From the sequence record OV032902.1: a stretch of DNA of 64,000 nt, one strand, 5' to 3'. Every line of letters begins with the position of its first letter. Positions within the stretch are counted from its first letter, which is position 1. A program made the position numbers and the translations under genes. Below the pieces are notes generated by a model. That model had not been told where the DNA came from, searched no databases, and worked only from the letters and a program-made list of their open reading frames with translations. Below are positions 1,053 through 37,015 of this stretch, one piece after another.

Positions 1053-3562
<2,510 letters not shown>

Positions 3563-5526: not shown

Positions 5527-6101
5527 TGAGAGATCCTAAAGACGATGTTGGCCGAATTATTATGTTCATTGAGCGCCACGTAGAAACTAAGGGCATCTGC
5601 ACAATTGCCAAATGTATCGATACAGATGTTTTCTGGTTATACTACAGAGACCCAGAAGGACAGGAATACATGGTGCATCCAGCACTAGGTGCTTTCCCTA
5701 TCAAGAAACAACAACTCATGGAATACTTTACGCTTTATCAAAAGGCAACTAAGCAGTTAGTTACTTTTGGTACGCATTTTGAATTACATGGCGTTGGAGC
5801 TAAAGGCAAGACGGATATTCTTAAATATAATCTGCCTGGTCTTAAGCGCTTGAACAATCGAAACGATGGTATCTTTATTGACTGTGTGACAGGTGACGAA
5901 ATTAAGATACGTCGTCAGATGCGCACAGAAGTTCTTCCTGACTATCGCTTCAATGCAGGCGAAGTTAACAAAGAACTAATCATCGGCACCAAGCTATGCA
6001 AGTTTGGCAGAAGTCCTCGTGACATTTACAACAAAGACTTCGTTATTCTTCCTGAGTCGCATCTCATGTATCGACTAGTCGAAAAAGGTAAGAAAGTATG
6101 A
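5526..6101 (+). CDS. Hypothetical protein
   Basis: 191-aa ORF, TAATG-coupled to NADAR. Confidence 0.7.
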   Translation: MRDPKDDVGRIIMFIERHVETKGICTIAKCIDTDVFWLYYRDPEGQEYMVHPALGAFPIKKQQLMEYFTLYQKATKQLVTFGTHFELHGVGAKGKTDILKYNLPGLKRLNNRNDGIFIDCVTGDEIKIRRQMRTEVLPDYRFNAGEVNKELIIGTKLCKFGRSPRDIYNKDFVILPESHLMYRLVEKGKKV

Positions 6102-7619: not shown

Positions 7620-8447
7620 ATGACTGATATTCAAGTTACAAAACGTATTGGCACTTCCGAACCATTCATGGAAGAGAAAATCCATAAGGTAGTTACGTGG
7701 GCCGCAGAAGGTCTTCAACACGTATCGGTTAGCCAAGTTGTTATGTCTGCTAAGTTGCAGATTCAAAACGGTACTGCGACATCAGATATCCACAGCGCAC
7801 TAATCAAAGCAGCTGTTGGTCTTATCACTGAACGCGCACCTGATTACCAAATCCTAGCAGGTCGCCTAATGGCGTTCTCTATTCGTAAACGTGCTTATGG
7901 CAAGTACGAACCATTCACTCTAAAAGAGCAAGTGCATCTTATGGTTGCAGATGGCCGTTACGACCACACTCTTTTAGAAGACTACACTGACGAAGACCTA
8001 GACCGTCTTAACCAGTACATCAAACACGACCGTGACCTTTCTATCGGTTGGGCAGGTATGGCACAGCTTAACGATAAGTATCTTGTGCAAGACCGTGACA
8101 CTGGCGAAATCTTTGAGTCTCCTCAGTTTATCTACTTCCTAGTAGGTGCTACATTGTTCTCTAAATATCCAGAGCCAATGCGTACTGAAAAGATCATCCG
8201 TTTCTACGAAGCAACATCTACTGGCCGTTCGTCTCTACCGACTCCTATCATGTCTGGTGTACGTACATCTCTGCGTCAGTTCTCATCTTGTGTTGTTATC
8301 GAAGCAGACGATTCTATCCGTGGTATCGGTGCAGCAGCAACAGCTGTAATGATCTACGTAGCACAGCGTGCAGGCATCGGTCTTAACTTTGGTGCTATCC
8401 GTGCTAAAGGTTCTAAGATTCGTGACGGGTCTACTGTACATACGGGT
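7620..8447 (+). CDS. nrdA: Class Ia ribonucleotide reductase alpha subunit, exon 1
   Basis: ATP cone (VTKR.G..EPF), ESPQ, SLPTPIM.GVRT..RQFSSCV, GIG; ends ...VHTG at the intron 5' splice site. Confidence 0.95.
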
Positions 8448-9495
8448 TAATTCGTAGCCCCTTCTAGGAGTAATCCTAGTCGATCACCTCTCTAAACGAA
8501 GGAAGTCCCATGTGGACAACTATCGTGCTAAATTAAATCAATGTCCTCCAATTAAAAACAGGAGGCATCTATGGGAAAATGGATATCTCTTGAAGAAGTT
8601 CAAGAAATAAATAAGGCTATTCAAAAACATACTGATCCAGAAATAAGAAAGAAATTTAATATCACTAAGCGTCAACTGGACTCACTTAAAAGTAATTACG
8701 GTCTAGTGAGAAACTGGTGGCTTTTCTTTCCTACTTTTCCTGGAGAAATATGGAAACGAATAAGAAATTCCGATACGGCGGTTTCTAACCTGGGAAGATT
8801 CAGAAGACTTAGGTCTGGAAAAATAATCCAACCATGGGAAGGAAGCAAAGGAAAATATCTTTATCTGGAAATAACCAAAGATAAAGAATTAAAAACCGTT
8901 CTTGCGCACCGCATGGTGGCAATTTCTTTCGTTAAAAACCCAAACCCCAAAACCAAAAAAGAAGTTAACCATCTGGATGGCAATAAAAGAAACATTTTGC
9001 CAGAAAATCTAGAATGGTGTACCCCAGAAGAAAACGTTCGACATGCTATAGAAACTGGCCTGAAGAAACCTAATCTGGGATTAAGTAACGGAATGTCTAA
9101 ACTCAGTCTGGATGAAGTCATAGCTATACGGTCGTGTACTACCAGCAGAAGAGTTAAAGAACTTTCTAAAACTTTGAATGTCAATGAAAAGACGGCGTTA
9201 AAGTGTTACTACAAATTAACTTATTTGGATATTGATTTATAAAAGCGTAACGACTATCGAAAGCATAACATAAGAGAAAGACTTATGTGAAGAAGCGAGT
9301 AGAGTACGGCCCAAGTGGGTGGACGTGAGAGTCCTTAAATGGAAATGGGAGGGAGCCTTTAGTTGGTAAAAGATTAAAGGTTCATGACATAGTCTCGACA
9401 GCAATTTCTTTGGGAATGGAAATTGTATTCTATGGTAACATAGAGCTGCGCGTAATGGCGCGGGTCAGAAGTAACGATTCTGACTGAAGATATCG
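8448..9495 (+). mobile_element. Group I self-splicing intron (1048 nt) with homing endonuclease
   Basis: P1 GGGU|UA-AUUCG-UAGCCC with U.G at the splice site; P4/P6-like CTCTAAACGAAGGAAG and CGTGCTAAAT; P7 GACTA (9252) pairs with TAGTC (9390); terminal G9495; splicing restores in-frame HTG-VVQFLK. Confidence 0.92.
8571..9242 (+). CDS. Intron-encoded HNH homing endonuclease (NUMOD4 + HNH, I-HmuI-like)
   Basis: VSNLGR, HRMVAISF..NP...EVNHLDGNKRN...NLEWCT.EEN..HA; GGAGG RBS; AT-richer, AGA/AAA-rich codon use. Confidence 0.92.
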   Translation: MGKWISLEEVQEINKAIQKHTDPEIRKKFNITKRQLDSLKSNYGLVRNWWLFFPTFPGEIWKRIRNSDTAVSNLGRFRRLRSGKIIQPWEGSKGKYLYLEITKDKELKTVLAHRMVAISFVKNPNPKTKKEVNHLDGNKRNILPENLEWCTPEENVRHAIETGLKKPNLGLSNGMSKLSLDEVIAIRSCTTSRRVKELSKTLNVNEKTALKCYYKLTYLDIDL

Positions 9496-10950
9496 GTCGT
9501 ACAATTCCTTAAGGTATTCGAAGCAGCGACTGGTTCATGTGCACAAGGCGGTATCCGTAAAGGTTCTGCGACTTCTTACTACCCGTTCTGGCACCGTGAT
9601 GTTCTAGAGTTCCTACCGCTTAAGAACAACCGTGGTACAGAAGAAAACCGCGTACGTCACCTAGACTATGCAATCCAATGGAACCGTCTATTGTTCGAAC
9701 GCATTAAAGCAGGTAAAGAACTAACCTTGTTCTCTCCGGCAGATGTTCCTGAGTTGAAGAAACTATTCTTCTCTGACGACTACGAAGGCTTTAAAGCTGA
9801 GTACGAGCGTTGTGAAGCACGTGACGATTTAATCGTTGAGAAAGTATCTGCTCTTGAGCTAATGCAAATCTTTATCCGTGAGCGTTCACAAACTGGTCGT
9901 TACTACTTCCAAGATGCTTACCACACAAATGCACATACACCGTTCAATCCAAAATATGCACCTGTGCGTCAGTCTAACCTGTGTCTAGAGATTGCTCTAC
10001 CAACTGAGCCTCTTGTACGCAACGTAGACGACGAAGATGCAGAGATTGCACTGTGTACTCTGTCTGCACTTAACTGGCTGGTTATCAATACCGAAGAAGA
10101 GATGGAAGAAATCTGTGACATCGTTATTGAAGCATTGGATATGGTTCTGTCTTACCAGGACTACCCACTGGCTGCGGCTGAGCGTTCTGTTCGTAAATAC
10201 CGTCCACTTGGTGTTGGCGTAATCAACTACGCTGCTGACATTGCACGTCACTCTTGGAAATACGGTGACCGTGAAGCATTGAACTACACTCACCGTAAGA
10301 TGGAAATGATGCAGTACTACTTAATGAAAGCATCTGTTCGTCTAGCGAAAGAGAAAGGTCGCTGTGACGGTTACGAAAACCTAAACATCGCTAACAACAA
10401 GCTGGTGATTGATTCATACTGTAAGAACGTTGACGAACTACACGACGAAGTTCTACATATGGATTGGGATAGCCTGCGTAAAGATATCGACAAGTACGGT
10501 ATCCGTAATGCAACAGTAACTGCCCTAATGCCATCTGAAACTTCTTCTCAAGTTGTTGGCGCTACCAACGGCATCGAGCCACCACGTAGCTACGTAACAG
10601 CTAAGAAGTCTAAGTCTGGTGCATTGTCGCTAGTTGTTCCTAACCCTGAAAAGCATTTGCATGATTACACTTATGCTTGGGACATGCCGAACAACAAAGG
10701 TTACCTACATACGGTTGCGGTATTCCAGAAGTTTGTTGACCAAACTATCTCGGCTAACTTCTACTACGACCCTAAGAAGTACCCTAACGACTTGGTACCA
10801 ACTAAGGTCATCATGGCCGATATGGCTCTATGTCAGAAGTATGGCATCAAGACCGGTTACTACCACAATACCCGTCCAGCTGGCGAAGATAAGATGACTA
10901 TCATCGACGACGCTACAGAGGACTGCGGTGGCGGCGGTTGTAAAATCTAA
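9496..10950 (+). CDS. nrdA: Class Ia ribonucleotide reductase alpha subunit, exon 2
   Basis: SCAQGGIRKGSAT, LKNNRGTEENRVRHLDY, SNLCLEI, ALCTLSA, RPLGVG, MPSETSS, NGIEP, KTGYY, C-terminal CGGGGCKI; spliced product 760 aa. Confidence 0.95.
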   Translation, partial: VVQFLKVFEAATGSCAQGGIRKGSATSYYPFWHRDVLEFLPLKNNRGTEENRVRHLDYAIQWNRLLFERIKAGKELTLFSPADVPELKKLFFSDDYEGFKAEYERCEARDDLIVEKVSALELMQIFIRERSQTGRYYFQDAYHTNAHTPFNPKYAPVRQSNLCLEIALPTEPLVRNVDDEDAEIALCTLSALNWLVINTEEEMEEICDIVIEALDMVLSYQDYPLAAAERSVRKYRPLGVGVINYAADIARHSWKYGDREALNYTHRKMEMMQYYLMKASVRLAKEKGRCDGYENLNIANNKLVIDSYCKNVDELHDEVLHMDWDSLRKDIDKYGIRNATVTALMPSETSSQVVGATNGIEPPRSYVTAKKSKSGALSLVVPNPEKHLHDYTYAWDMPNNKGYLHTVAVFQKFVDQTISANFYYDPKKYPNDLVPTKVIMADMALCQKYGIKTGYYHNTRPAGEDKMTIIDDATEDCGGGGCKI

Positions 10951-13183: not shown

Positions 13184-15700
13184 ATGAACAATCGAGACTT
13201 TCTCGTTCGCTTGAAAAAGACCGACCGCGATGGTGGCGATTACCTTAGTTGGGTAGTTTGGCCATCAAGCAATACACAGAACCTTCCTTCTGTGGTTGAG
13301 TCTTATGACGGCAACAAGTCTTACCCTGCTGGTATCTTCATTAACTATGAAGGTGCACTTTACAAATCTAATTCCAATGTTCCTGTAGGTTCTTGGGATG
13401 CCGCTAAATGGGATTCAGCTGAAGGCTACGAAGCGTACATTACGCCGCACAGTACTAATCTGGATTATCCTGCTGACTCAGTTATCTATGACGCCAACGG
13501 TGATCTATGGTATCTAGAAGACGCTGCTGCGAAAGGTTTGTTTGAAGACCAAGCATGGGTTAAGTTAACACCTGAAGAAAAGATCGAGACAGCGGTAGCT
13601 TATCTTGACCCTAATTCTCAGGTAGAAGCACCACGTGTTATTCGTGGTTCATTCGTAGATGTTGAAAAGACAGCAGTAGACCTACTAGGTATTGCGCTTG
13701 CTTACTACGATGCTTCTGACAAGTACACTCTTTTCCAGGACGTGTCTGGTAGTGTTCCAGTAACAACTCCTGGCCAATACGTTCGTTACATCTCTGACCA
13801 AATCGGTGAGAACGACGTCGTTATCAATGCGGCTATTCCACCTGTATATCGTGAAGATGCTAACGGTCGTGGTTTCCTAGAGAATGCGGACGGTACTAAC
13901 TTTAGCATTCAATCAGCTGGTGAAACTACTGCGGCACAAGTGTATCAGGCTATTCCAAATGTGGGCGTACTACGTTCTGCTGCTGGTAACCTAGATGCAG
14001 GCTTTGATGCTAAACCTTCTGAACAGGCTAATGTTCCTTTCACTCAAGCAGTTATCGTTGATGCAGCAGCTTCAGCAGAAGACCAAGACAAAGTGATCAT
14101 GGAACTACGTCGTTTCTCTAACCGTTACGACAACGGTGTTCTTACTAGTCTTAGCTACTTCTTCCGTGAGCAAACTGCTGGTTACACTTTCGTTGGTGAA
14201 GTAAACCTACGTAACGTGTTTACTCTGCGCGGCATGTTCTTTGCTTCTGAAGTAATTGAAGATCTAACAACTTGGGATGTTTCTAAAGTTGAAGACTTCT
14301 CTGAAATGTTCTGTGAGTCTACAGGTACGATCGACCTGTCTGGCTGGAATACTGCTTCTGCTAAGTACATGGACTCAATGTTCGAAAACAACACAGTGTT
14401 TGATTCTCCTATCTCTACACTGAATGTTTCTAGCGTTATTTCTGCTCGTCGTATGTTTGCTGGCGCTACTGTCTTTAACCAAGACATCACAGCACAAGAG
14501 TGGACTGCTCTTAACTATGCAGATGAAATGCTAGCAAACACAACTGTTTACGATACAACAGTTACGGGCTTTACTGCTCCTGCTCTTGTTGCAGCTAATG
14601 GTTTCTTGCGTAATGCTATTGCATACAACCAAGTAACGACGCTAAGTCTTCCGTCATTGACTACAGCACAGAACTTCTTTGAAGGCGCTACGCTAATGTC
14701 AAGTGACATCACTATCAATGCGATTGACTTGGTAAACATTAGTGCGTTCTTGCGTGACGTTACAGACTTCTCTGCTCGTGTACAGTTTAGCTCTACTGCT
14801 ATTACTGTTGCCGATGAAGCATTTAAAGGCTGTTCTCGCTTCAACGCTGCATTGAACATCAACATGGAAAACATCGTATCAGCTATCTCTATGATGGAAG
14901 GTTGTGCATCGTTCAACCAACCATTGGAAATTAGTCCTGCTAATATCCTAACAGCTAGCCGCATGTTCCATGGCTGTACTAGTCTAGTAACACAGCCGTT
15001 CACTTCACTGTTCTTTGAAGCTGCTACAGACATCGACTTCTTGTTCTATGACTGTGGTGCTTTGACAGCTGACCTAAGTGACATCCAAGCTCCATTTGCA
15101 GAGTCTCTTGAATCCATGTTCGAGAACTGTATTGGTGTTACTGGCCAAGTAACGGTTAACGCACGTAATGCTACAACTGCCCTTAACATGTTTAAAGGCT
15201 GTTCTGCATTCAACGGTCGAGTTGACATGACTCTGTACCGTGCAACAACTATCGAGTCTATCTTCGAAGAGTGTCTAATGCTTAACGACGATGTGACTAT
15301 CAACGCTCCTCGCTTGACGAGTGTTAAAGCTGCTTTCCGTGGCTGTGATGTAATGACTGGTAACATTATGATTACCACTGCTCTAGTTACAGACTGGTCT
15401 AGCTTCCTTGAGAATGCTCTCGTATGGAATGCTCCTCTGTTACTGGACATGACGTCTATCACTACAGCTGGTGCGATGTTTAAAGGTGCTGTAGCATTTA
15501 ATGCTGACATCTCTAACATCCCTCTGAATGACATCACTGACTTGACTGAGTTCTTGTCTGGCGCAACGGCGTTCGATCAGGACCTTTCTACTCTTTGTGT
15601 AGAGAAGCATCCTGTAATGCCTGCTGACTTCGTTTCTGAAGACATGCCATTCTTTACAGATACAGCTAAGCACCCTCAATGGGGCATTGCTTGTGCATAA
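13184..15700 (+). CDS. BspA / DUF285-type repeat protein, probable virion-associated adhesin
   Basis: Tandem ~25-aa repeats (WDVSKVEDFSEMF, WNTASAKYMDSMF, MFAGATVFNQDI, FKGC..FN); two aromatic N-terminal modules; TLFQDVSG..PVT..GQ.V module; C-terminal FDQDLS.LCV...P.WG. Confidence 0.8.
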   Translation: MNNRDFLVRLKKTDRDGGDYLSWVVWPSSNTQNLPSVVESYDGNKSYPAGIFINYEGALYKSNSNVPVGSWDAAKWDSAEGYEAYITPHSTNLDYPADSVIYDANGDLWYLEDAAAKGLFEDQAWVKLTPEEKIETAVAYLDPNSQVEAPRVIRGSFVDVEKTAVDLLGIALAYYDASDKYTLFQDVSGSVPVTTPGQYVRYISDQIGENDVVINAAIPPVYREDANGRGFLENADGTNFSIQSAGETTAAQVYQAIPNVGVLRSAAGNLDAGFDAKPSEQANVPFTQAVIVDAAASAEDQDKVIMELRRFSNRYDNGVLTSLSYFFREQTAGYTFVGEVNLRNVFTLRGMFFASEVIEDLTTWDVSKVEDFSEMFCESTGTIDLSGWNTASAKYMDSMFENNTVFDSPISTLNVSSVISARRMFAGATVFNQDITAQEWTALNYADEMLANTTVYDTTVTGFTAPALVAANGFLRNAIAYNQVTTLSLPSLTTAQNFFEGATLMSSDITINAIDLVNISAFLRDVTDFSARVQFSSTAITVADEAFKGCSRFNAALNINMENIVSAISMMEGCASFNQPLEISPANILTASRMFHGCTSLVTQPFTSLFFEAATDIDFLFYDCGALTADLSDIQAPFAESLESMFENCIGVTGQVTVNARNATTALNMFKGCSAFNGRVDMTLYRATTIESIFEECLMLNDDVTINAPRLTSVKAAFRGCDVMTGNIMITTALVTDWSSFLENALVWNAPLLLDMTSITTAGAMFKGAVAFNADISNIPLNDITDLTEFLSGATAFDQDLSTLCVEKHPVMPADFVSEDMPFFTDTAKHPQWGIACA

Positions 15701-17975: not shown

Positions 17976-18631
17976 CAAACACTACAGTTGTCATCATTGC
18001 TCTGATTGTATTGGTTTGTGCCCTAGCTTGGGCACTTAACCGAACGCTACGTCAGAAGCGTGAGTTGGAAGAGCGAATGCCTAACATCCAGCATTTCGCT
18101 GACCGTTGGTTCAATCTAACTAAAGCTTGTTCTCGTCTAACTGTCCTAAAGGGAGGACGAGAGTGGCTAGAGTATCGCCTGGTTAATTGCCAGTTTGAGG
18201 AAATCACGAAAGCAATTACCTTAGGGGCTGATATCAAGAAGCGTTACTTTATCCTGTTTTATTGGGACAAAGACGCGCGCGATAAAATGCCTGTCGGTTC
18301 TTCATCTGAGGAAGCTTACTTCCGTGGACATGGTCGATGGTACGGTTGGGATTATTGGGATAGAACTCGCTTGGTTCGTTCCGGTATTAACAAGAACACT
18401 TATGTTCGTCAGTTCTATGACTACGATGACGTAGAGTTCAACGACTTTATCGGCAAGCTTCAGCAAGCTGGTATCTCTTTTGTTGCCGCTAGTCCTGATG
18501 GAGTTACGCGCCCCAACGAAAAAGAGTCAATCTGTATTCCTTCCAATATAGCAGATATGCCTCCTGGCTACTGGCACGAAATGGAAGACATCATCGACCG
18601 AGTAACGCCTGGTGCATTAACTCGCTCATAA
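17972..18631 (+). CDS. Hypothetical protein, N-terminal TM + coiled coil
   Basis: TM VVIIALIVLVCALAWAL then RQKRELEER; ATGA overlap. Confidence 0.75.
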   Translation: MTNTTVVIIALIVLVCALAWALNRTLRQKRELEERMPNIQHFADRWFNLTKACSRLTVLKGGREWLEYRLVNCQFEEITKAITLGADIKKRYFILFYWDKDARDKMPVGSSSEEAYFRGHGRWYGWDYWDRTRLVRSGINKNTYVRQFYDYDDVEFNDFIGKLQQAGISFVAASPDGVTRPNEKESICIPSNIADMPPGYWHEMEDIIDRVTPGALTRS

Positions 18632-23797: not shown

Positions 23798-23840
23798 TAG
23801 CCTATCTGCCTTCGGGCAGATAGGTTATTTATTTTGATTC
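23798..23840 (+). terminator. Terminator
   Basis: TAGCCTATCTGCC-TTCG-GGCAGATAGGTTA then TTTATTTT. Confidence 0.8.
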
Positions 23841-24274: not shown

Positions 24275-24656
24275 TCTAATAATTGTTATCGTCTGGGCAG
24301 TAGCCTTTTCAGTTGGCGGCTTTGTCGCTATTGACTCTGCACTAGAACTAACTGGACACTATGCAGTAGTCATGAAGATTCTTCTGGTTATTGCAGTTGT
24401 ACTTGTGGGTAAATTCTATATTGCCTACACTAAAGAACCAAAGAAAGAATATCTGCAATCTATGCTCTGTCTTATGATTGTGGTTTTCCCTTTCTTTCTT
24501 CTAGGCGTGGACTATCGATTCATCGAAGTATTCGAATGGGCCGAATGGAATAAAGATATGGCGGGTGCTGTTATGACCGTCGGCTGTGTGCTTGCTTTCG
24601 TGTTTGCTATCCTTATGGATAACTGGCACGATCGCAAGTATCCACAAAAGAAATGA
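24267..24656 (+). CDS. Four-TM membrane protein
   Basis: 129 aa, four hydrophobic segments. Confidence 0.75.
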   Translation: MLNLIIVIVWAVAFSVGGFVAIDSALELTGHYAVVMKILLVIAVVLVGKFYIAYTKEPKKEYLQSMLCLMIVVFPFFLLGVDYRFIEVFEWAEWNKDMAGAVMTVGCVLAFVFAILMDNWHDRKYPQKK

Positions 24657-24670
24657 ATCTGAAAAGATAT

Positions 24671-24686
24671 TCATCTCTATATTACC
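24671..24686 (+). promoter_or_regulatory. phiKZ-type early promoter (TCATCTCTATATTACC)
   Basis: TATATTAC at 24678-24685. Confidence 0.75.
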
Positions 24687-24791
24687 TATATGGATGAGAT
24701 GCATTAAACATCAATTCCCTCCCTCTTAGGCTTCGGCTTAAGAGGGGTTAATCAACTATCTAAACTAAAATTTTTGTTCAAGGAGAACATC

Positions 24792-25205
24792 ATGACTTTC
24801 GCACGTTCAACTTCAATCCTAACTGTTATCGCAATCCAAGTTCTATTTGTATCTATCTACCTGTTCCTACGTAACCAAGCTTTACCGGTTCTACCAGAAG
24901 GAATGGAGTGGGTAACTTACCGTGACATGGATATCCTGTCAGTCGGCCTAGGCTACATGGGTATGTGGTACTTTAAAGAAACTAAAACCGCTGCTGTATT
25001 CCAAGCGGTGTTCGGTGCACTACCTGGCTACATCGTATCTGTCGCAATGCTATCGTGGATTGGCGTACATTACAATGTTGTCTTCTCGTTCCTTGGTTTA
25101 ATTGTTGCTGCCGGATCTGCATGTTTCACCGGCATGATTACTCCATACTACGAAGCTCTACAAACTAAGCTAGGCTTCTTCGAGCGTCTATACGCTAAAC
25201 TATAG
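24792..25205 (+). CDS. Four-TM membrane protein
   Basis: AAGGAG RBS before ATG 24792; four hydrophobic segments. Confidence 0.75.
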   Translation: MTFARSTSILTVIAIQVLFVSIYLFLRNQALPVLPEGMEWVTYRDMDILSVGLGYMGMWYFKETKTAAVFQAVFGALPGYIVSVAMLSWIGVHYNVVFSFLGLIVAAGSACFTGMITPYYEALQTKLGFFERLYAKL

Positions 25206-25208
25206 TGA

Positions 25209-25250
25209 TAAACTCGGAGTCTCTTGCGAGAGGCTCCCATGATTATCATT
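25209..25250 (+). repeat. Intergenic hairpin element, copy 1
   Basis: TAAACTC-GGAGTCTCT-TGCG-AGAGGCTCC-CATGATTATCATT. Confidence 0.85.
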
Positions 25251-25273
25251 CACAACTAAATAAGGAAAACATT

Positions 25274-25546
25274 ATGTCTTTTACTGTATCTTTCATCATG
25301 CCACGTTTCATGGAATCTGAGTGTCTAGAAGTTATGCGTCCTGCTGAGATGCGTGACGGTGAACGCGCTTTCCGTGGTAAGATTACCTACAAGAAACAAT
25401 ACGTTGATCTATACCGTAACGGTAACAAGTTCAACGGTTGTATTCTTGCAATGAAAGAATTCGATTCTAAAGAAGAAGCTGAAGCATACAAAGCTAAGGT
25501 TTCTAAAGTAGAAGGAATTGACGAAATTCAAATCAACGAAAAGTAA
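25274..25546 (+). CDS. Hypothetical early protein
   Basis: TAAGGA RBS before ATG 25274; C-terminal FDSKEEAEAY. Confidence 0.75.
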   Translation: MSFTVSFIMPRFMESECLEVMRPAEMRDGERAFRGKITYKKQYVDLYRNGNKFNGCILAMKEFDSKEEAEAYKAKVSKVEGIDEIQINEK

Positions 25547-25589
25547 TAAACTCGATGTCGCTTACGAGCGGCATCTATGATTATTATTC
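25547..25589 (+). repeat. Intergenic hairpin element, copy 2
   Basis: TAAACTC-GATGTCGCT-TACG-AGCGGCATC-TATGATTATTATT. Confidence 0.85.
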
Positions 25590-25609
25590 ATACTGAAAAG
25601 GAAAACAAT

Positions 25610-25987
25610 ATGTACACAACTATCGCAATTATCATCATGGCTTCTGTAGCTTTCATCGTAGCAAACTTCTTGAAAGACAAGTGCGCTTACAAATCTCAAA
25701 AGCAAGAAGAGCTAAATGAAGTATTCGACCATTACGAAAAATGCATGTTCAAAGAATCTGAAGGCATCAACGTAATGACTCTTGAAGAAATTAGTGCAGT
25801 AGCGATGAATGCACCTAAAACAGAATTAGGTTACTGCTTCCGTCGCTACTTCCTAGTCCACCTAAAAGAAACAATGGATGCAGAAGACATTACGTTCAAC
25901 TCTATCCAAGCTAAGCAGGCAGCAGAAACAGCATACGGTTCTTGTATGACTGACTACGGCCTACCTGAAATGCAAATTCAACAGTAA
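25610..25987 (+). CDS. Hypothetical protein, N-terminal TM
   Basis: AAGGA RBS before ATG 25610; TM IAIIIMASVAFIVANFL. Confidence 0.75.
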   Translation: MYTTIAIIIMASVAFIVANFLKDKCAYKSQKQEELNEVFDHYEKCMFKESEGINVMTLEEISAVAMNAPKTELGYCFRRYFLVHLKETMDAEDITFNSIQAKQAAETAYGSCMTDYGLPEMQIQQ

Positions 25988-26030
25988 TATACTCGATGTC
26001 ATCTGCGGGTGGCATCCATGAATATTATTT
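25988..26030 (+). repeat. Intergenic hairpin element, copy 3
   Basis: TATACTC-GATGTCATC-TGCG-GGTGGCATC-CATGAATATTATT. Confidence 0.85.
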
Positions 26031-26051
26031 ACAGCACTTAAGGAAACTATT

Positions 26052-26357
26052 ATGAAAACTCTATCTTTTATTCTATCTGTAATGTTCGTTCTATTCGTAC
26101 AAAACGCAAACGCTGCACAAACTGATGTTAAACTAGAAATCATCGATGCTGTTGTTTGTTCTCAAATGTCTTTTACTGACGCTGCCTTTGAAGCTGAAAC
26201 TTACCTAGAAGAAGAACGTACAATGTACGCTCCTGAGTTCTTTGGTGAAGCGATGTCTAAAGGTAACGCTCGTGTATCTGAACTAACTATGTTAGAAAGC
26301 TTTGACGCTGACGCAGTTGAAGCTACTGTTAACAACCACTGTGAATCTTTCCTATAA
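26052..26357 (+). CDS. Secreted acidic protein (Sec signal peptide)
   Basis: MKTLSFILSVMFVLFVQNANA|AQ. Confidence 0.75.
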   Translation: MKTLSFILSVMFVLFVQNANAAQTDVKLEIIDAVVCSQMSFTDAAFEAETYLEEERTMYAPEFFGEAMSKGNARVSELTMLESFDADAVEATVNNHCESFL

Positions 26358-26381
26358 TCTAAAGTCTAAGGAGACTATATC

Positions 26382-27167
26382 ATGAAAAAAGTATCACCAT
26401 CAACAGCAGCAGCTATCGCTTGTGTAGGCTACATCGCCGCAGTTCTAATCGCATTCTCTTTCGCAATGAAAGCAGAAGCAAGTGAACTTGAGTTCGAACA
26501 GAAAGCACGCGCTATCGTAGAACACCATATCAATGCACAAGACGATATGGTACATGTCCAGCTCAAGGCTGTTGTTCCACTTGACAAGAAAGCAGACTAC
26601 GACGAAACATTAGCTATCGCATATTCAGAACTATGTGAGCGCTACTGTACATTTAATCGTGCAGAAGAAGCTAAAGCTCTTCGTCAACTTGCTGACGGTC
26701 TAGTACTACAAGGCGAAGCTATTTCAATTCAGAAATCTATCCTGTTTGAAAACATTCGCAAAGGCGATTGGAACAGCTACCAAGAAATCATGCACGATCA
26801 TCACATGACTGCATTCAACAAGTACATGGATAAAGAAATCAATGTACTAGCGGAACAGTACACCGACTGGCTAAACTCGCTAAGCAATGAATCTTTCCGT
26901 TTAGCATTAGCTGACTTGTGTACTAACAGTGGTACTGCTTGTGAACTATATCTATCTCGTGCAGCGGCAGCTTACAAATTTGCTCCTGATGGTATTGTGG
27001 GTAACACTAAGCAATACTTGATTGATCGTTCGGCTACTAGTGCAATTGATCGCATGATGATCAAGAACCTACTTCAAGACTTTGCTATGAACAATGTCGT
27101 ATATGAGGATATCGCAGCTGCTCTACTAGCTCGCGATTACCTAATCTACGAAGCAGCATACAAGTAA
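26382..27167 (+). CDS. Secreted or anchored helical protein (signal peptide)
   Basis: MKK...IAAVLIAFSFAMKAEA|SE. Confidence 0.75.
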   Translation: MKKVSPSTAAAIACVGYIAAVLIAFSFAMKAEASELEFEQKARAIVEHHINAQDDMVHVQLKAVVPLDKKADYDETLAIAYSELCERYCTFNRAEEAKALRQLADGLVLQGEAISIQKSILFENIRKGDWNSYQEIMHDHHMTAFNKYMDKEINVLAEQYTDWLNSLSNESFRLALADLCTNSGTACELYLSRAAAAYKFAPDGIVGNTKQYLIDRSATSAIDRMMIKNLLQDFAMNNVVYEDIAAALLARDYLIYEAAYK

Positions 27168-27210
27168 TATACTCGGAGTCTCTTGCGAGAGGCTCCTCTG
27201 AATATTATTT
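27168..27210 (+). repeat. Intergenic hairpin element, copy 4
   Basis: TATACTC-GGAGTCTCT-TGCG-AGAGGCTCC-TCTGAATATTATT; stem-loop identical to copy 1. Confidence 0.85.
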
Positions 27211-27234
27211 AATCTACCTCAAAAGGAATACAAA

Positions 27235-27711
27235 ATGAAAAACCTATTTGCAATCATCCTAGCTACTCTTTCAATCAACGTATTTGCAGCTGACTTCGAT
27301 AACATGACTCAAGCTGAAATCGATGCTTACTGGGCAGAACAAGATGCTGGTGAAGAATACGGCGAAGAATCTCCGTTCTACTTTACTAAAGAAGAAGGCG
27401 TAATTATTTACCAATACGCTGAAATGTGTGCAGCTGTTTGTCCAGCAGACGGCGGCATGTACGAAGCTAACGAAATGCTAGACGCGTTTAAAGTTGTTGG
27501 TCATGACCTTCACTTTACACAAGCTGGTATTGAAATCCGTTACGGCATCAAGCGCATCCGTAAAGCACTTGTTGAAGGTAACCAATACGCTGTTGACAAA
27601 GAAGTAAAACGCTTCATGTCCGATCACGATCTATTCTGGATGGCTTACGAGACTCTAGTAACTGAACGTGAAAACTGGGCAGTTGATTCAACTAACGCAT
27701 TTGAAAAGTAA
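27235..27711 (+). CDS. Secreted acidic protein (Sec signal peptide)
   Basis: MKNLFAIILATLSINVFA|ADF. Confidence 0.78.
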   Translation: MKNLFAIILATLSINVFAADFDNMTQAEIDAYWAEQDAGEEYGEESPFYFTKEEGVIIYQYAEMCAAVCPADGGMYEANEMLDAFKVVGHDLHFTQAGIEIRYGIKRIRKALVEGNQYAVDKEVKRFMSDHDLFWMAYETLVTERENWAVDSTNAFEK

Positions 27712-27768
27712 TAAACTCGATGTCGCTTTCGAGCGGCATCTATGATTATTATTTTATCTCTATATAAC
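27712..27768 (+). repeat. Intergenic hairpin element, copy 5, followed by promoter variant TATATAAC
   Basis: TAAACTC-GATGTCGCT-TTCG-AGCGGCATC-TATGATTATTATT-TTATCTCTATATAAC. Confidence 0.85.
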
Positions 27769-27783
27769 CTTAAGGACTATCCA

Positions 27784-28026
27784 ATGAAATCACTCCTAAC
27801 GCTACCAATCCGTGCTCAACAAATCGCTTGTATCATGGAAGACAAAAACGAAACACAATACATCTTTATCTGTAACCGTAAGTGTATCGTTCAGAAAACA
27901 AACAGTAGTCCTAAGAAGCCTTCTAAGTTCATCGCAACTACAAGCTTCTCTAGCATCAATGAAGCAATTGCGTTCGAGCAAAAGCTTAATGCTAAGGGCA
28001 TCGAATATTACGCAGCTCGTTACTAG
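27784..28026 (+). CDS. Hypothetical protein
   Basis: TAAGGA RBS before ATG 27784; SFSSINEAIAFEQKLNAKGI. Confidence 0.7.
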   Translation: MKSLLTLPIRAQQIACIMEDKNETQYIFICNRKCIVQKTNSSPKKPSKFIATTSFSSINEAIAFEQKLNAKGIEYYAARY

Positions 28027-28034
28027 GAGGTAAC

Positions 28035-28259
28035 ATGACTGAACTAGCAATCACCATTTTGCTTATTCTTGGCATCAGTACAGTAATAGGTTATGTTTGC
28101 TCTCTGGCCATCTATTATCGCGGCCAGTCAAATGACGACTTTAAACAATTTTTAATCACGATGCTGGTCTTATGCATCGTTGTAGTCGACGTGTTTCTCA
28201 TCATGGAGGCAATCGCCCTGTTTATTGAGAAGCACTATCTAATCCCACAGGCTCTATAA
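28035..28259 (+). CDS. Small two-TM membrane protein
   Basis: AGGAGG RBS; two hydrophobic segments. Confidence 0.7.
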   Translation: MTELAITILLILGISTVIGYVCSLAIYYRGQSNDDFKQFLITMLVLCIVVVDVFLIMEAIALFIEKHYLIPQAL

Positions 28260-28269
28260 GGAGATCATC

Positions 28270-28611
28270 ATGTCTGTAGCTAAACAACAACTATTCGCAA
28301 TCCTTCACACTTTCCCTCGTTCTCAAAAGTACGATATTCTTCCGCACATTAACGAAGCTCTGTATAGTGAACTCAAAGCTACACTTACAGACTTCTTCGA
28401 TAGCGCTCCGGAAGAAGTTCTTCATAAAGGTCGTAACTACTACGTTTGGCAAAACGTTGCAATCCTTGAGCCGTTTCCTAACGCGGATGGTGGTTGCTTC
28501 GAGTTTGAAGTATTCGTAGGCGGTAAGTCTTCAGCTATTCGTGATAGTCTTCGTGAAACTATCAATACGTGCTTCTTTGAAGTAATGGGAGATTTTGACG
28601 TATGCAAGTAA
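28270..28611 (+). CDS. Hypothetical protein
   Basis: AAGGAG RBS, 113 aa. Confidence 0.75.
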   Translation: MSVAKQQLFAILHTFPRSQKYDILPHINEALYSELKATLTDFFDSAPEEVLHKGRNYYVWQNVAILEPFPNADGGCFEFEVFVGGKSSAIRDSLRETINTCFFEVMGDFDVCK

Positions 28612-29195
28612 AACGATTCGTACTGACTGGATTCGATAAAACCGCTAAGCTGGACATGCCTTTGTCCAGCGTTCTTAAAACTCGTTCTGTGTATCAGACC
28701 CTCAAGTCAACTGCCTTTATGGGCCATGTTGAAATCAGCATCGATAAGCTTGTCAAGTGGACCACTGCCCAGATGAATGAGTATCCTAAAGATACGCGCC
28801 TCAGTCTGGTTTGTATGTGTCGTTTTCTTGGCGAGTTACCTGACAGTCTAGATGACTTTGCTTTATTGCCCACCGACCAAGCTCGTGCTTTAAGTCGCGT
28901 AAGTAAGAAGCAAGGCGATGCACTGATGTTCACTTTCCAAACGGAATCTGGACGTTGGCGCATGACAGCAGGTGGTGCTGCTTGGGGAATGTATGAATCA
29001 GAAGCCGAAGCACATGATGCTGGCCTAGCTGATTTCAATCGTCGCATCACAGAAGAGTTCTTGCCTGTAGCAGGTGAATCCGCTTCTAAGCAATTGAAAG
29101 AAATCCGTGATTGGGTTATCTATCATCGCATCAACAAGATGGCATGGCAACCACAAGGTGTAAACGTCATCAATCTAACTCGCTCATATGCGTAA
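28602..29195 (+). CDS. Hypothetical protein
   Basis: 197 aa, GGAG RBS. Confidence 0.7.
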   Translation: MQVKRFVLTGFDKTAKLDMPLSSVLKTRSVYQTLKSTAFMGHVEISIDKLVKWTTAQMNEYPKDTRLSLVCMCRFLGELPDSLDDFALLPTDQARALSRVSKKQGDALMFTFQTESGRWRMTAGGAAWGMYESEAEAHDAGLADFNRRITEEFLPVAGESASKQLKEIRDWVIYHRINKMAWQPQGVNVINLTRSYA

Positions 29196-29233
29196 TAACA
29201 AAGGGTCCTTTTGAGGGCCCTTGATTATTATTC
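29196..29233 (+). repeat. Divergent copy of the hairpin element
   Basis: TAACA-AAGGGTCCT-TTTG-AGGGCCCTT-GATTATTATTCA (downstream motif shared with copy 2). Confidence 0.6.
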
Positions 29234-29258
29234 ATCACTAACAAAAGGAAAAAATGTT

Positions 29259-29429
29259 ATGGAAACTATCAACATCTCTGACGTAGAAATTCGCAACACT
29301 GCTTGTACTGTTCGCATCCAAACTGAAATCGATGCTATCCGTTCTGAAGAACTTGAAAACCTTGTAGATGACGCTGACAAGTATGACAGCAACATCAACG
29401 AAATCGACTTCTCTGACTTCGTACTATAA
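29259..29429 (+). CDS. Small acidic protein (56 aa)
   Basis: AAGGA RBS; 15 D/E vs 4 K/R. Confidence 0.7.
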   Translation: METINISDVEIRNTACTVRIQTEIDAIRSEELENLVDDADKYDSNINEIDFSDFVL

Positions 29430-29438
29430 GGAGGTTCT

Positions 29439-30161
29439 ATGTGCTCTAACAATATCGTAGAACGCGCTACATTAATCAAAGCGTTATCTGGTAGTATGGT
29501 TATGCTGGCAACAGGCGGGAAGGTATTCGTTAAGCGCCAAACCATCGAATTCAAATGTCGTCGACATGGCAAGTTCCACACTACACCTAAAGACATCATG
29601 GACCGTGCAAAACAACGTGCGGGCTCAGCATGCAAGAAGTGTAACCATCGTCGTGCAGTAACCAATATCGAGATCGAACAAATCGAAGGCGAGATTGGTG
29701 AAATCCTGAAACGCTCTAAGATGATGCCGCTCACTGTAGAAATACCTACCTTATCTAAGGTATATCAATACAAGTGTAACAAAGGCCACATCACCGAGTG
29801 TCGTGCAAAAGAAATGAAGCATCAGCTAGAGTCCGGTGAGACTGTTATCTGTGCTGAGTGTAAGGCCATACGTCATAATGACTATGAGTCACGTGTTGCT
29901 AACATCAAGAAGTCTATTGATAAGCAACTTGAAAAATACCCTGATGTAAAACTAATCGATGACTACATCCCTGCTCGTAAGAATGCAGTGTTGAAATTCG
30001 AGTGTAAGCATCACGGTAAACTAAGGGTGAAAGTTGCAGACATGCAAGCTAACCCAATTTGTCAACAATGCGCCAAGTTGATTGCGGAGGAAACGATGTC
30101 TCCAATTGAAGCTTGGCTTAAGAATAATTTCTCATGGAGAAGGAAAGGTTATGAGCTCTAA
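29439..30161 (+). CDS. Protein with three CxxH..CxxC zinc-binding repeats
   Basis: CRRHG..CKKC, CNKGH..CAEC, CKHHG..CQQC; GGAGG RBS. Confidence 0.75.
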   Translation: MCSNNIVERATLIKALSGSMVMLATGGKVFVKRQTIEFKCRRHGKFHTTPKDIMDRAKQRAGSACKKCNHRRAVTNIEIEQIEGEIGEILKRSKMMPLTVEIPTLSKVYQYKCNKGHITECRAKEMKHQLESGETVICAECKAIRHNDYESRVANIKKSIDKQLEKYPDVKLIDDYIPARKNAVLKFECKHHGKLRVKVADMQANPICQQCAKLIAEETMSPIEAWLKNNFSWRRKGYEL

Positions 30162-30441
30162 CGTTTATGTAAAGTACACTGGTCGCGTAGTTGAAAACGG
30201 TCAAGCTGTTCCTGTATGGAAAACTCGTCCGTCTGTAAAGGAAGACGTTAAGACTGGCGCTAAGATTCCAGTTCCTGGCGTTCCTCTAATCGCAATGAAT
30301 GGTCCATACGACCGTGAAACTGCGCAGAACTTCCTAGACATGCGCGAGCGCGAAAGCAACGGTTTATCTGTATGGGAAATCGTTGAAGAAGCTGACCTAG
30401 CTAAACACACGGATGTAACTGAAAGCAATATCCGCAAGTAG
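30151..30441 (+). CDS. Hypothetical protein
   Basis: AAGGAAAGG RBS before ATG 30151. Confidence 0.7.
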   Translation: MSSNVYVKYTGRVVENGQAVPVWKTRPSVKEDVKTGAKIPVPGVPLIAMNGPYDRETAQNFLDMRERESNGLSVWEIVEEADLAKHTDVTESNIRK

Positions 30442-30442
30442 A

Positions 30443-30492
30443 AAACTAGATGCCTCACCTTCGGGTGAGGTATCCATGATTTTTATTTTTTC
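30443..30492 (+). terminator. Terminator related to the hairpin element
   Basis: AAACTA-GATGCCTCACC-TTCG-GGTGAGGTATC-CATGATTTTTATTTTT. Confidence 0.7.
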
Positions 30493-30508
30493 TTAAAAGG
30501 AGAAACAC

Positions 30509-31123
30509 ATGAACCATCGTAATAATGAAGTAAAGGAAATAAAAGGCTTCCGAGTCAAAAAGATTCATCTGGTAGGCGACCATGAAAAGATTTCAAAGCG
30601 TTCGTTAGAAAGTACTCCTGCTGGTATGTTCTGTTACAACTTGATTGTTCAATATGCTGAGGAAGGCTTTGAGGAATTCTCTCATAAAGAATGCATTGAG
30701 TTCTACAAAGAACATTATCGTGGTACTTATGGAGACTTCCGTCTACTTAACGTGGCGGCACGCATGGGTCGTCCTGCACGCAGTCTAGATGACTTTGTCT
30801 ATATTCATCGCGGACTATGGGATGTTCTACGTATGGCAGTTAACAAAGGCGACCAACCTTGTTATACGTCATTTAACAAATGGACACAGCGTTATCATAT
30901 CGGACAATCTAGAACCATCGGTGAAGCTCGTTGTTTTGTTAACAAGCACGAGAGTCATGAATATGGCGTTAAATGCGTTACAGATAAAATCCTAGAATAT
31001 GTCGCTACCTGTCCGCATGAACATGCTAATCGTAAACTAAATGAACTTGTAGACCATATGCTACATAAAGTATTGAATGGCGATTACTGGGAAACACTAC
31101 CGACCAGTTTCTACAAGCTGTAA
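30509..31123 (+). CDS. Hypothetical protein
   Basis: AAGGAG RBS, 204 aa. Confidence 0.75.
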   Translation: MNHRNNEVKEIKGFRVKKIHLVGDHEKISKRSLESTPAGMFCYNLIVQYAEEGFEEFSHKECIEFYKEHYRGTYGDFRLLNVAARMGRPARSLDDFVYIHRGLWDVLRMAVNKGDQPCYTSFNKWTQRYHIGQSRTIGEARCFVNKHESHEYGVKCVTDKILEYVATCPHEHANRKLNELVDHMLHKVLNGDYWETLPTSFYKL

Positions 31124-31144
31124 AAAATTAATGGGGTAACTAAT

Positions 31145-31297
31145 ATGATGACCTTACTGTTTATCTGGGGAATTGTCTCAGTTGCGATAGCAGGAGTTGT
31201 TCTGGCTAATCTCAGAATACGAGTATCAAAAGTGAAGACTAAGCAACCCGTCAAACGTAAGGTTAGTCATCGCAAACGAATTAGCATCAAAGTATAG
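31145..31297 (+). CDS. Small membrane protein (50 aa, absent from the ORF track)
   Basis: GGGG RBS; MMTLLFIWGIVSVAIAGVVLANLRIRVSKVKTKQPVKRKVSHRKRISIKV, TM + basic tail. Confidence 0.6.
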   Translation: MMTLLFIWGIVSVAIAGVVLANLRIRVSKVKTKQPVKRKVSHRKRISIKV

Positions 31298-31311
31298 CAA
31301 GGAGCTAAGAA

Positions 31312-31584
31312 ATGATTGATGTGTTTGTAATTACCCTTTCTGTTTTAGTAGGCATCGTACTCGGGTGGTACGTCAGACCTGCTAGAAAGGAACGAGATGA
31401 AGACATGGAGATTCTAGATTCTCTTCTCATCTCGTATCTATGGACTATGCGTTCTAAGTATGGTTGTGCCTACAGTATACTAAAGGCACTCAACGAAGAC
31501 GCCTATGGTCTTTCACCCGACAATCGTAAACGTTTACAGTTGCTGATAGCAAAGCTTGATGCAACAAAATCAAATCACCTCTAG
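31312..31584 (+). CDS. Hypothetical protein, N-terminal TM
   Basis: AAGGAG RBS; TM VFVITLSVLVGIVLGWYV. Confidence 0.7.
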   Translation: MIDVFVITLSVLVGIVLGWYVRPARKERDEDMEILDSLLISYLWTMRSKYGCAYSILKALNEDAYGLSPDNRKRLQLLIAKLDATKSNHL

Positions 31585-31974: not shown

Positions 31975-31981
31975 CATTAAG

Positions 31982-32035
31982 CCTACTAGCCTTCGGGCTA
32001 GTAGGTTATTCTCTTTTCTTTTTTTTTCTTTTTAT
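31982..32035 (+). terminator. Terminator
   Basis: CCTACTAGCC-TTCG-GGCTAGTAGG then TTATT and a T tract. Confidence 0.85.
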
Positions 32036-36712: not shown

Positions 36713-37015
36713 ATGTATCAACATGTTTTGAAAGACCTTCTCGACGCCATGAAGATTGCCCCTCGAAAAAGATTCGTACGCATCAAGCGAGATATCGCTA
36801 GTGCTACTTATCCTGACATGGTGTTCGAAAAAGGTTCCTACGGAGTCGAGCTTGAAGGCAATGGCTTAATGCGTCAATGTATCTTGATTGCTTATTCTAA
36901 CAATCCTGATTCTGACCCAATTCCTGAGCTGTGGTTTGTTGAGGTTCCTTTCATTGATTTGGAAACCGCAGACTGTGGTATCAAGGATGCCTTTAAGCGA
37001 GGCTATATCAAATAA
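36713..37015 (+). CDS. Hypothetical protein
   Basis: GGAG RBS before ATG 36713. Confidence 0.7.
   Translation: MYQHVLKDLLDAMKIAPRKRFVRIKRDIASATYPDMVFEKGSYGVELEGNGLMRQCILIAYSNNPDSDPIPELWFVEVPFIDLETADCGIKDAFKRGYIK

Follow-up and report, generated by a model that had tools for sequence, protein, structure and literature searches.

Elements resembling the ribonuclease III sites of phage T7 between genes of a nucleus-forming Vibrio jumbo phage

The genome of Vibrio phage vB_VpaM_sm033 (sm033; OV032902.1, 320,253 bp) carries a short RNA element of about 50 nt that is repeated between its genes, and six of the copies lie in a 64,000-nucleotide stretch, bases 62001-126000, which is called the window here and whose numbering is used throughout unless a position is marked as genomic. 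Judged by their sequence and by the fold modelled for them, these elements are very likely processing signals for ribonuclease III (RNase III) of the type found in phage T7, which would be cut by the enzyme of the host. The element is thus of a known kind, but its carrier is unusual and its distribution runs across phage families; the literature searched contained no report of RNase III sites of the T7 type in phages that are jumbo or infect Vibrio. Annotated in the sm033 record are a nuclear shell protein, numerous beta-type subunits of RNA polymerase in split form and the standard structural genes of jumbo phages, which together identify it as a nucleus-forming (phiKZ-like) jumbo phage. Its closest relatives among 50,697 phage records are the Vibrio phages pir03 and C-ZP2022 (53% chimallin / shell-protein identity).

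An earlier look at the sequence, referred to below as the original prediction, had described a hairpin with a 9-bp stem that occurs five times. All five copies are present where it placed them and read as described, down to the tetraloops, which are UGCG, UACG, UGCG, UGCG and UUCG from the first copy to the fifth. A feature that is absent from that description is that the conserved flanks of the hairpin are complementary to each other: a lower stem of 8 bp joins element positions 1-8 to positions 40-47, and the flanks are the two strands of this stem and not single-stranded signals. Next to the lower stem comes an asymmetric internal loop, whose 5' strand is the 4-nt ACUC and whose 3' strand is the 5-nt YMUGA, and an upper stem of 9-11 bp with a tetraloop completes the fold. 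This fold is predicted for every copy, with z-scores from -2.5 to -5.5. The 11-nt motif on the 3' side occurs six times in the window where 0.18 occurrences are expected, and none of 100 shuffles reaches six. Rfam returned nothing relevant for window positions 24500-31500, even at E <= 10.

Both helices are supported by covariation. In the seven tight copies of sm033 the 9-bp stem is paired throughout and eight of its nine pairs have changed on both sides; this is matched in 0 of 500 shuffles and not approached in any slid register. Compensatory changes in the stem had been noted in the original prediction. The U.G pair at stem position 5 had been called invariant, which is correct for the five window copies but not for the genome, where one of the seven tight copies departs from it. 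The lower stem covaries among the sm033 copies too, with pair 4:44 switching between G-C and A-U and pair 8:40 between A-U and U-A (site 3 has the compensatory U8-A40 pair). When 25 sequences from seven phages are aligned, pairing holds in 99.3% of the cells, and changes on both sides are seen at 14 of 17 pairs, again with 0 of 500 shuffles and no slid register comparable. Six of the eight lower-stem pairs covary in this alignment, and this is an independent result because the alignment was made with a model that did not include the lower stem. In addition to what pairing needs, the bases ACUC, GUC/GGC and YAUGA are conserved.

For searches, two covariance models were used: model R1, built from nothing but seven sm033 copies and covering the upper stem only, and model R2, covering both stems. 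Model R1 was run over the genome of T7 with filters off, and its six best matches are at 1429-1480, 13855-13904, 36818-36868, 5849-5899, 18503-18565 and 3102-3150. All six are intercistronic, and model R2 scores them with E-values from 2.6e-10 to 1e-3. One is found between genes 1 and 1.1, the location of the classic RNase III substrate R1.1, an RNA of 60 nt that is cut primarily at one place and whose internal loop is asymmetric, 4 nt against 5 nt (PMC6121014). The fold predicted for T7 R1.1 is the same two-helix, 4/5-loop fold as that of the sm033 copies. Another match holds the annotated phi6.5 promoter (18545) within its loop, and this fits R6.5, since the phi6.5 start site is just upstream of the R6.5 cut (PMC6938266). 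The stop codons of T7 genes 0.4, 6.3 and 18 fall at element positions 3-5, as they do at most of the sm033 sites. The annotation tables of the T7 records NC_001604 and V01146 do not list RNase III sites. We take the six matches to be R0.5, R1, R1.1, R4.7, R6.5 and R18.5. Their cuts, presumably at 1468, 3138, 5887, 13892, 18563 and 36856, would all separate model position 37 from position 38, the U from the G of YAUGA.

The features that the sm033 copies and the T7 sites have in common include the lower stem, the 4/5 asymmetric internal loop and the upper stem; the unpaired ACUC on the 5' side and YAUGA on the 3' side; the GUC/GGC core with its U.G pair; and the intercistronic placement on the sense strand with the upstream stop codon in the lower stem. 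Phage promoters adjoin some copies in both phages, and the arrangement of sites 1-6 in the window is like that of the early operon of T7, which also has RNase III sites inside it. The first option of the original prediction, an mRNA processing or stabilising site, is supported by this likeness of sequence and structure to the T7 processing signals. There are also differences. The carrier in one case is a 320-kb nucleus-forming jumbo phage with multisubunit RNA polymerases and in the other a 40-kb podovirus, and the sm033 copies are more compact, having a 9-bp upper stem and an UNCG-type tetraloop where the T7 sites have 9-10 bp and loops of 5-7 nt or longer. The likeness is one of sequence, fold and placement; cleavage in sm033 is a prediction.

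If the elements work as in T7, the sense transcript would fold each of them into lower stem, 4/5 internal loop, upper stem and tetraloop, and RNase III of the Vibrio host would bind this helix of roughly two turns. The internal loop would restrict cutting to a single phosphodiester, the one that links U to G in the YAUGA of the 3' strand, and a long early transcript starting at early promoters would in this way be divided into single-gene messages. Each upstream message would end about 35 nt past its stop codon in an intact hairpin that may protect it against 3'-to-5' exonucleases, and each downstream message would keep its ribosome-binding site and begin 31-40 nt from its start codon; leaders of this length are what the predicted cuts leave at the sm033 copies. 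In Escherichia coli, internal loops are known to limit RNase III cleavage to one phosphodiester and to leave a protective 3' hairpin, with a minimum of 11 bp between the cut and the loop (PMC1540722). The sm033 elements reach this length with 9-11 upper-stem pairs plus three internal-loop positions, in a geometry deduced from the alignment. The host enzyme is the likely agent because an RNase III gene (PF14622) was not found in the sm033 record and the 'ribonuclease' annotated there is RNase H. The presence of six copies in N4, a T7-like phage of Vibrio cholerae, fits a use of the signal in Vibrio hosts.

Several points weigh against this interpretation. T7 itself grows without RNase III (PMC6938266), so that the benefit of having such sites may be small. 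The distal-box pairs that are optimal in R1.1 (UA/UG) are not obvious in the upper stems of sm033, which resemble those of R0.5 more. Nucleus-forming phages produce their early transcripts within a compartment, and this puts in question the access that a cytoplasmic enzyme would have to them before export. Finally, the T7 cut coordinates used for comparison, which are not annotated in the T7 records, are presumably those of Dunn and Studier 1983.

The placement of the copies within sm033 follows a narrow pattern (Table 1). The original prediction had proposed a covariance-model scan of the genome and its relatives, and with model R2 this gives 11 copies in sm033, all on the plus strand with E <= 1.2e-6 and with nothing further up to E = 1, as well as copies in related phages. 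All 11 have the same orientation as the genes they accompany. The rule that each copy comes just after a stop codon holds for ten of them but fails for the copy at genome position 170783, which lies in a 5' leader, directly downstream of an early-promoter-like motif and ahead of SM033_00183, and has no upstream gene on the same strand. In nine of the 11 copies the upstream stop codon is found exactly at element positions 3-5; at site 1 the stop comes one codon earlier and in-frame stops come after it. Copies resemble one another over about 51 nt and no further, and the genes beside them are not related, so that the copies are not leftovers of a tandem gene duplication.

Table 1. Elements of sm033 and neighbouring signals. 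Positions refer to the window unless given as genomic; scores are those of model R2.
Feature	Position	Strand	Predicted cut between	Score	Placement and details
Putative RNase III-type site 1	25204..25252	+	25240 and 25241	70.1 bits, E 1.2e-11	Between SM033_00099 and SM033_00100; lower stem 25204-25211/25243-25250; upper stem 25216-25224/25229-25237; -19.3 kcal/mol, z -4.6
Putative RNase III-type site 2	25542..25590	+	25578 and 25579	73.2 bits	SM033_00100 stop at positions 3-5
Putative RNase III-type site 3	25983..26031	+	26019 and 26020	70 bits	SM033_00101 stop at positions 3-5
Putative RNase III-type site 4	27163..27211	+	27199 and 27200	72.3 bits	SM033_00103 stop at positions 3-5
Putative RNase III-type site 5	27707..27755	+	27743 and 27744	74.2 bits	SM033_00104 stop at positions 3-5; early-promoter-like TATATAAC motif next, at 27761
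Putative RNase III-type site 6	30437..30489	+	30477 and 30478	48.3 bits, E 5.8e-7	SM033_00111 stop at positions 3-5; 11-bp upper stem, UUCG loop; -23.2 kcal/mol, z -5.5
Copies outside the window	genome 155854, 170783, 267720, 269715, 275224	+			
Variant hairpin	29191..29234	+			3' of SM033_00108; upper stem of 9 bp, symmetric 2-nt internal loop (CA/GA), lower stem
Early-promoter-like motif	24654..24695	+			TATATTAC at 24678
Early-motif copies in the window	15757, 23859, 24678, 36668				
Early-motif copies in the genome (examples)	genome 12813, 21522, 48995, 58434, 135533, 170761, 258373				
First canonical terminator-like hairpin 3' of the sites	31980..32017	+			12 bp, UUCG loop, T-rich tail

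Two looser relatives had been pointed out at 29201 and 30449, and they turn out to be different things. The one at 30449 is a full member of the set, site 6, whereas the one at 29201 is a separate variant with a 2/2 internal loop of CA and GA, which model R2 does not match and whose fold has -21 kcal/mol and a z-score of -5.3. Four hairpins with the CA/GA loop exist in sm033, each directly 3' of a gene (genome 260313, 264632 and 277418, and window 29199), with upper stems that start with AAGG and end with CCUU. An element like this variant is also found in C-ZP2022 (L010:3643), at the place syntenic to window position 29201. The variant is probably a related RNase III substrate.

The element also bears on gene calls. 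The annotated starts of SM033_00101 (25577) and SM033_00105 (27742) are AUG codons inside the internal loop, while starts with a ribosome-binding site are present at 25610 and 27784, respectively. The two proteins as annotated are probably 11 and 14 residues too long. A mini open reading frame starting from the internal-loop AUG (a frame like M-I-I-I in most copies) was considered and rejected: the bases concerned are the covarying 3' strand of the lower stem, and the same bases are common to the T7 sites.

Because the hairpins have a tail rich in U and A (UGAUUAUUAUU), it is natural to ask if they could be factor-independent terminators or pause sites for one of the multisubunit RNA polymerases of the phage, with release brought about by hairpin and tail. 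Many ordinary GC-rich hairpins in sm033 do have similar UUAUUAUU-like tails, and a loose terminator scan (5 T in 8) flags four of the seven window hairpins, namely sites 2, 5 and 6 and the 29201 variant. However, there is no uninterrupted U run, in agreement with the observation in the original prediction that no U tract follows the stem, and the T-rich tail pairs in the lower stem, covarying with the 5' flank as a helix strand. The corresponding elements in T7 are processing sites. The copy at genome 170783 lies between an early-promoter-like motif and a gene, where termination would abort the message. Hairpins followed by a T run, the canonical form of a terminator, stand apart from the elements at window positions 23798, 31980 and 34758. 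Termination, one of the options originally put forward, is thus a weak one, and we regard it as very unlikely. As a separate observation, a GC hairpin followed by a run of more than 10 T and then by a run of A is found between convergent genes at genome ~173057-173130 (L005:23057-23130), and is probably a bidirectional terminator.

Sites 1-6 lie between the early-promoter-like motif at 24678 and the first canonical terminator-like hairpin at 31980, and the motif probably starts a polycistronic unit that contains them all. Site 5 and the copies at genome 170783 and 275224 are directly beside such motifs. A further alternative is that the element is itself a promoter for a phage RNA polymerase, or else an operator for a phage RNA-binding repressor of the downstream gene. 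Its fixed position 31-40 nt upstream of start codons would suit either role, as would the conservation of sequence in excess of what pairing needs. Yet the conserved unpaired bases are those that are conserved in the RNase III sites of T7, no candidate for a binding protein was found, and the early promoter of sm033 is a different and far more abundant motif: the genome has its own distinct one, built around TATATTAC, in about 27 plus-strand copies. The promoter option of the original prediction is not supported, and a promoter or operator function has, in our estimation, hardly any chance of being right.

The early motif itself is strongly conserved and is found upstream of plus-strand gene arrays. 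It opens with a stretch rich in TTGA, which is followed by TCTCTATATTAC and, about 5 nt further downstream, by RTGG, and it very probably serves the virion RNA polymerase as early promoter. In jumbo phages, a conserved AT-rich motif upstream of early operons is known as the early promoter of this polymerase (PMC7598289). A second flavour of the motif, CACTTCTATATAAC, is seen at genome positions 154836, 190038, 190240 and 266095 and may represent a separate promoter class.

The distribution of the element outside sm033 was first visible in plain sequence comparisons. With the region as query, blastn gives short matches whose positions are exactly those of the elements; they are in pir03, C-ZP2022, Vibrio phage 150E35-1, Pantoea phage TacPo2, and the T7-like Vibrio phage N4 with its kin. 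BLAST with one 57-nt copy found few phages, and the covariance model reached further. In a census with model R2, the 11 copies of sm033 compare with 13 in Vibrio phage 150E35-1 (161 kb), six in Vibrio phage N4, six in T7, three each in the Vibrio jumbo phages pir03 and C-ZP2022, two in the Vibrio jumbo phage Yong XC31 and two in Pantoea phage TacPo2. The copies in N4, 150E35-1, TacPo2, pir03, C-ZP2022 and Yong XC31 have E <= 1e-4, are on the sense strand and are intergenic, and pir03 and C-ZP2022 carry copies at a place that is syntenic with sm033. BONAISHI, phiKZ and SPN3US have none, and the element is therefore not a general trait of nucleus-forming phages. Among those of this group that were checked, sm033 has the highest copy number in a patchy series of 11, 3, 3, 2, 0, 0 and 0. 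A strict pattern scan of IMG/VR gave 98 stretches, and the contigs that carry them are nearly all 38-41 kb long, as T7-like podoviruses are. Scan and census together indicate a module that is typical of T7-like phages and sporadic elsewhere.

A distribution of this kind, with the same module in unrelated phages, could also be expected if the main role of the element were at the DNA level, with the 51-nt repeats acting as recombination boundaries for the swapping of accessory genes, comparable to PeSL elements, and with the RNA fold being secondary. That the likeness of the copies does not extend past about 51 nt, with unrelated genes on either side, would agree with this. The directly bracketed genes 00100, 00101, 00103 and 00104 have no relative in the 50,697 phage records, while their unbracketed neighbours do have homologues in C-ZP2022, and there are 11 copies in sm033 versus 3 in each of its nearest relatives, pir03 and C-ZP2022. 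Like the PeSL elements of T4-type phages, the sites are short stem-loops that recur on either side of small accessory early genes. On the other hand, selection on RNA is suggested by the U.G pairs and by the absence of copies from the antisense strand, and the backbone gene order is collinear with that of C-ZP2022. Unlike PeSL, the sm033 hairpins come without an attached sigma-70 early promoter, and in fold and sequence they correspond to RNase III sites; no sigma-70-type promoter was found with the hairpins, and the region has fewer such sites than shuffles. For the shuffleable gene array that had been envisaged the evidence is divided: the gene order matches that of the nearest relative, yet the bracketed genes are orphans. 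We consider recombination as the main role to be highly improbable. The elements may have a secondary role in gene gain, given the orphan genes and the higher copy number.

A broader idea is that the 50-nt unit of stop codon and RNase III hairpin is a portable 'gene-end' module that spreads between unrelated phage families, multiplies within a genome along with orphan genes gained recently, and serves both in RNA processing and as a patch of homology for the insertion of accessory genes. The patchy distribution, the orphan status of the bracketed genes and the 81% identity over 76 nt between copy 1 and a copy in a T7-like Vibrio phage all fit such a module without proving it, and it is put forward here as a tentative suggestion that is rather unlikely to be right. 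Several small orphan genes between the sites (26052-26357, 26382-27167 and 27235-27711) encode N-termini that look like signal peptides, and their products, on this sequence evidence, are possibly secreted or membrane accessory proteins. The gene at 26052-26357 has a 39% identical homologue in C-ZP2022, located just after the second site of that phage. Pfam searches with ten flanking proteins gave no family above the cut-off.

Some features elsewhere in the genome were noted in passing. At window positions 7620-10950 (genome 69620-72950) the gene for the ribonucleotide reductase alpha subunit is annotated as two pieces, nrdA_1 and nrdA_2, on either side of a gene for an HNH endonuclease; this looks like an intron or another intervening element. 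Two stretches are without an annotated gene, one of about 14 kb at the right end (genome 305433-319196; L008:5433-19196) and one of 1.8 kb near 179 kb (L005:28665-30423); they could hold tRNA genes, other RNA genes or terminal repeats.

The prevailing view of nucleus-forming jumbo phages is that they depend little on the transcription machinery of their hosts. The sites described here suggest that the lineage of sm033 still uses an RNA-processing enzyme of the host to mature its early messages, and that it does so with a signal shared with T7. The predicted cuts provide exact positions with which transcript maps can be compared, and in annotation, recognising the element corrects two probable errors in start-codon calls (SM033_00101 and SM033_00105). 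Such sites may possibly be used as insulators in expression constructs for Vibrio. More generally, a small RNA-processing module that is common to otherwise unrelated phage families bears on how regulatory parts spread between phages.

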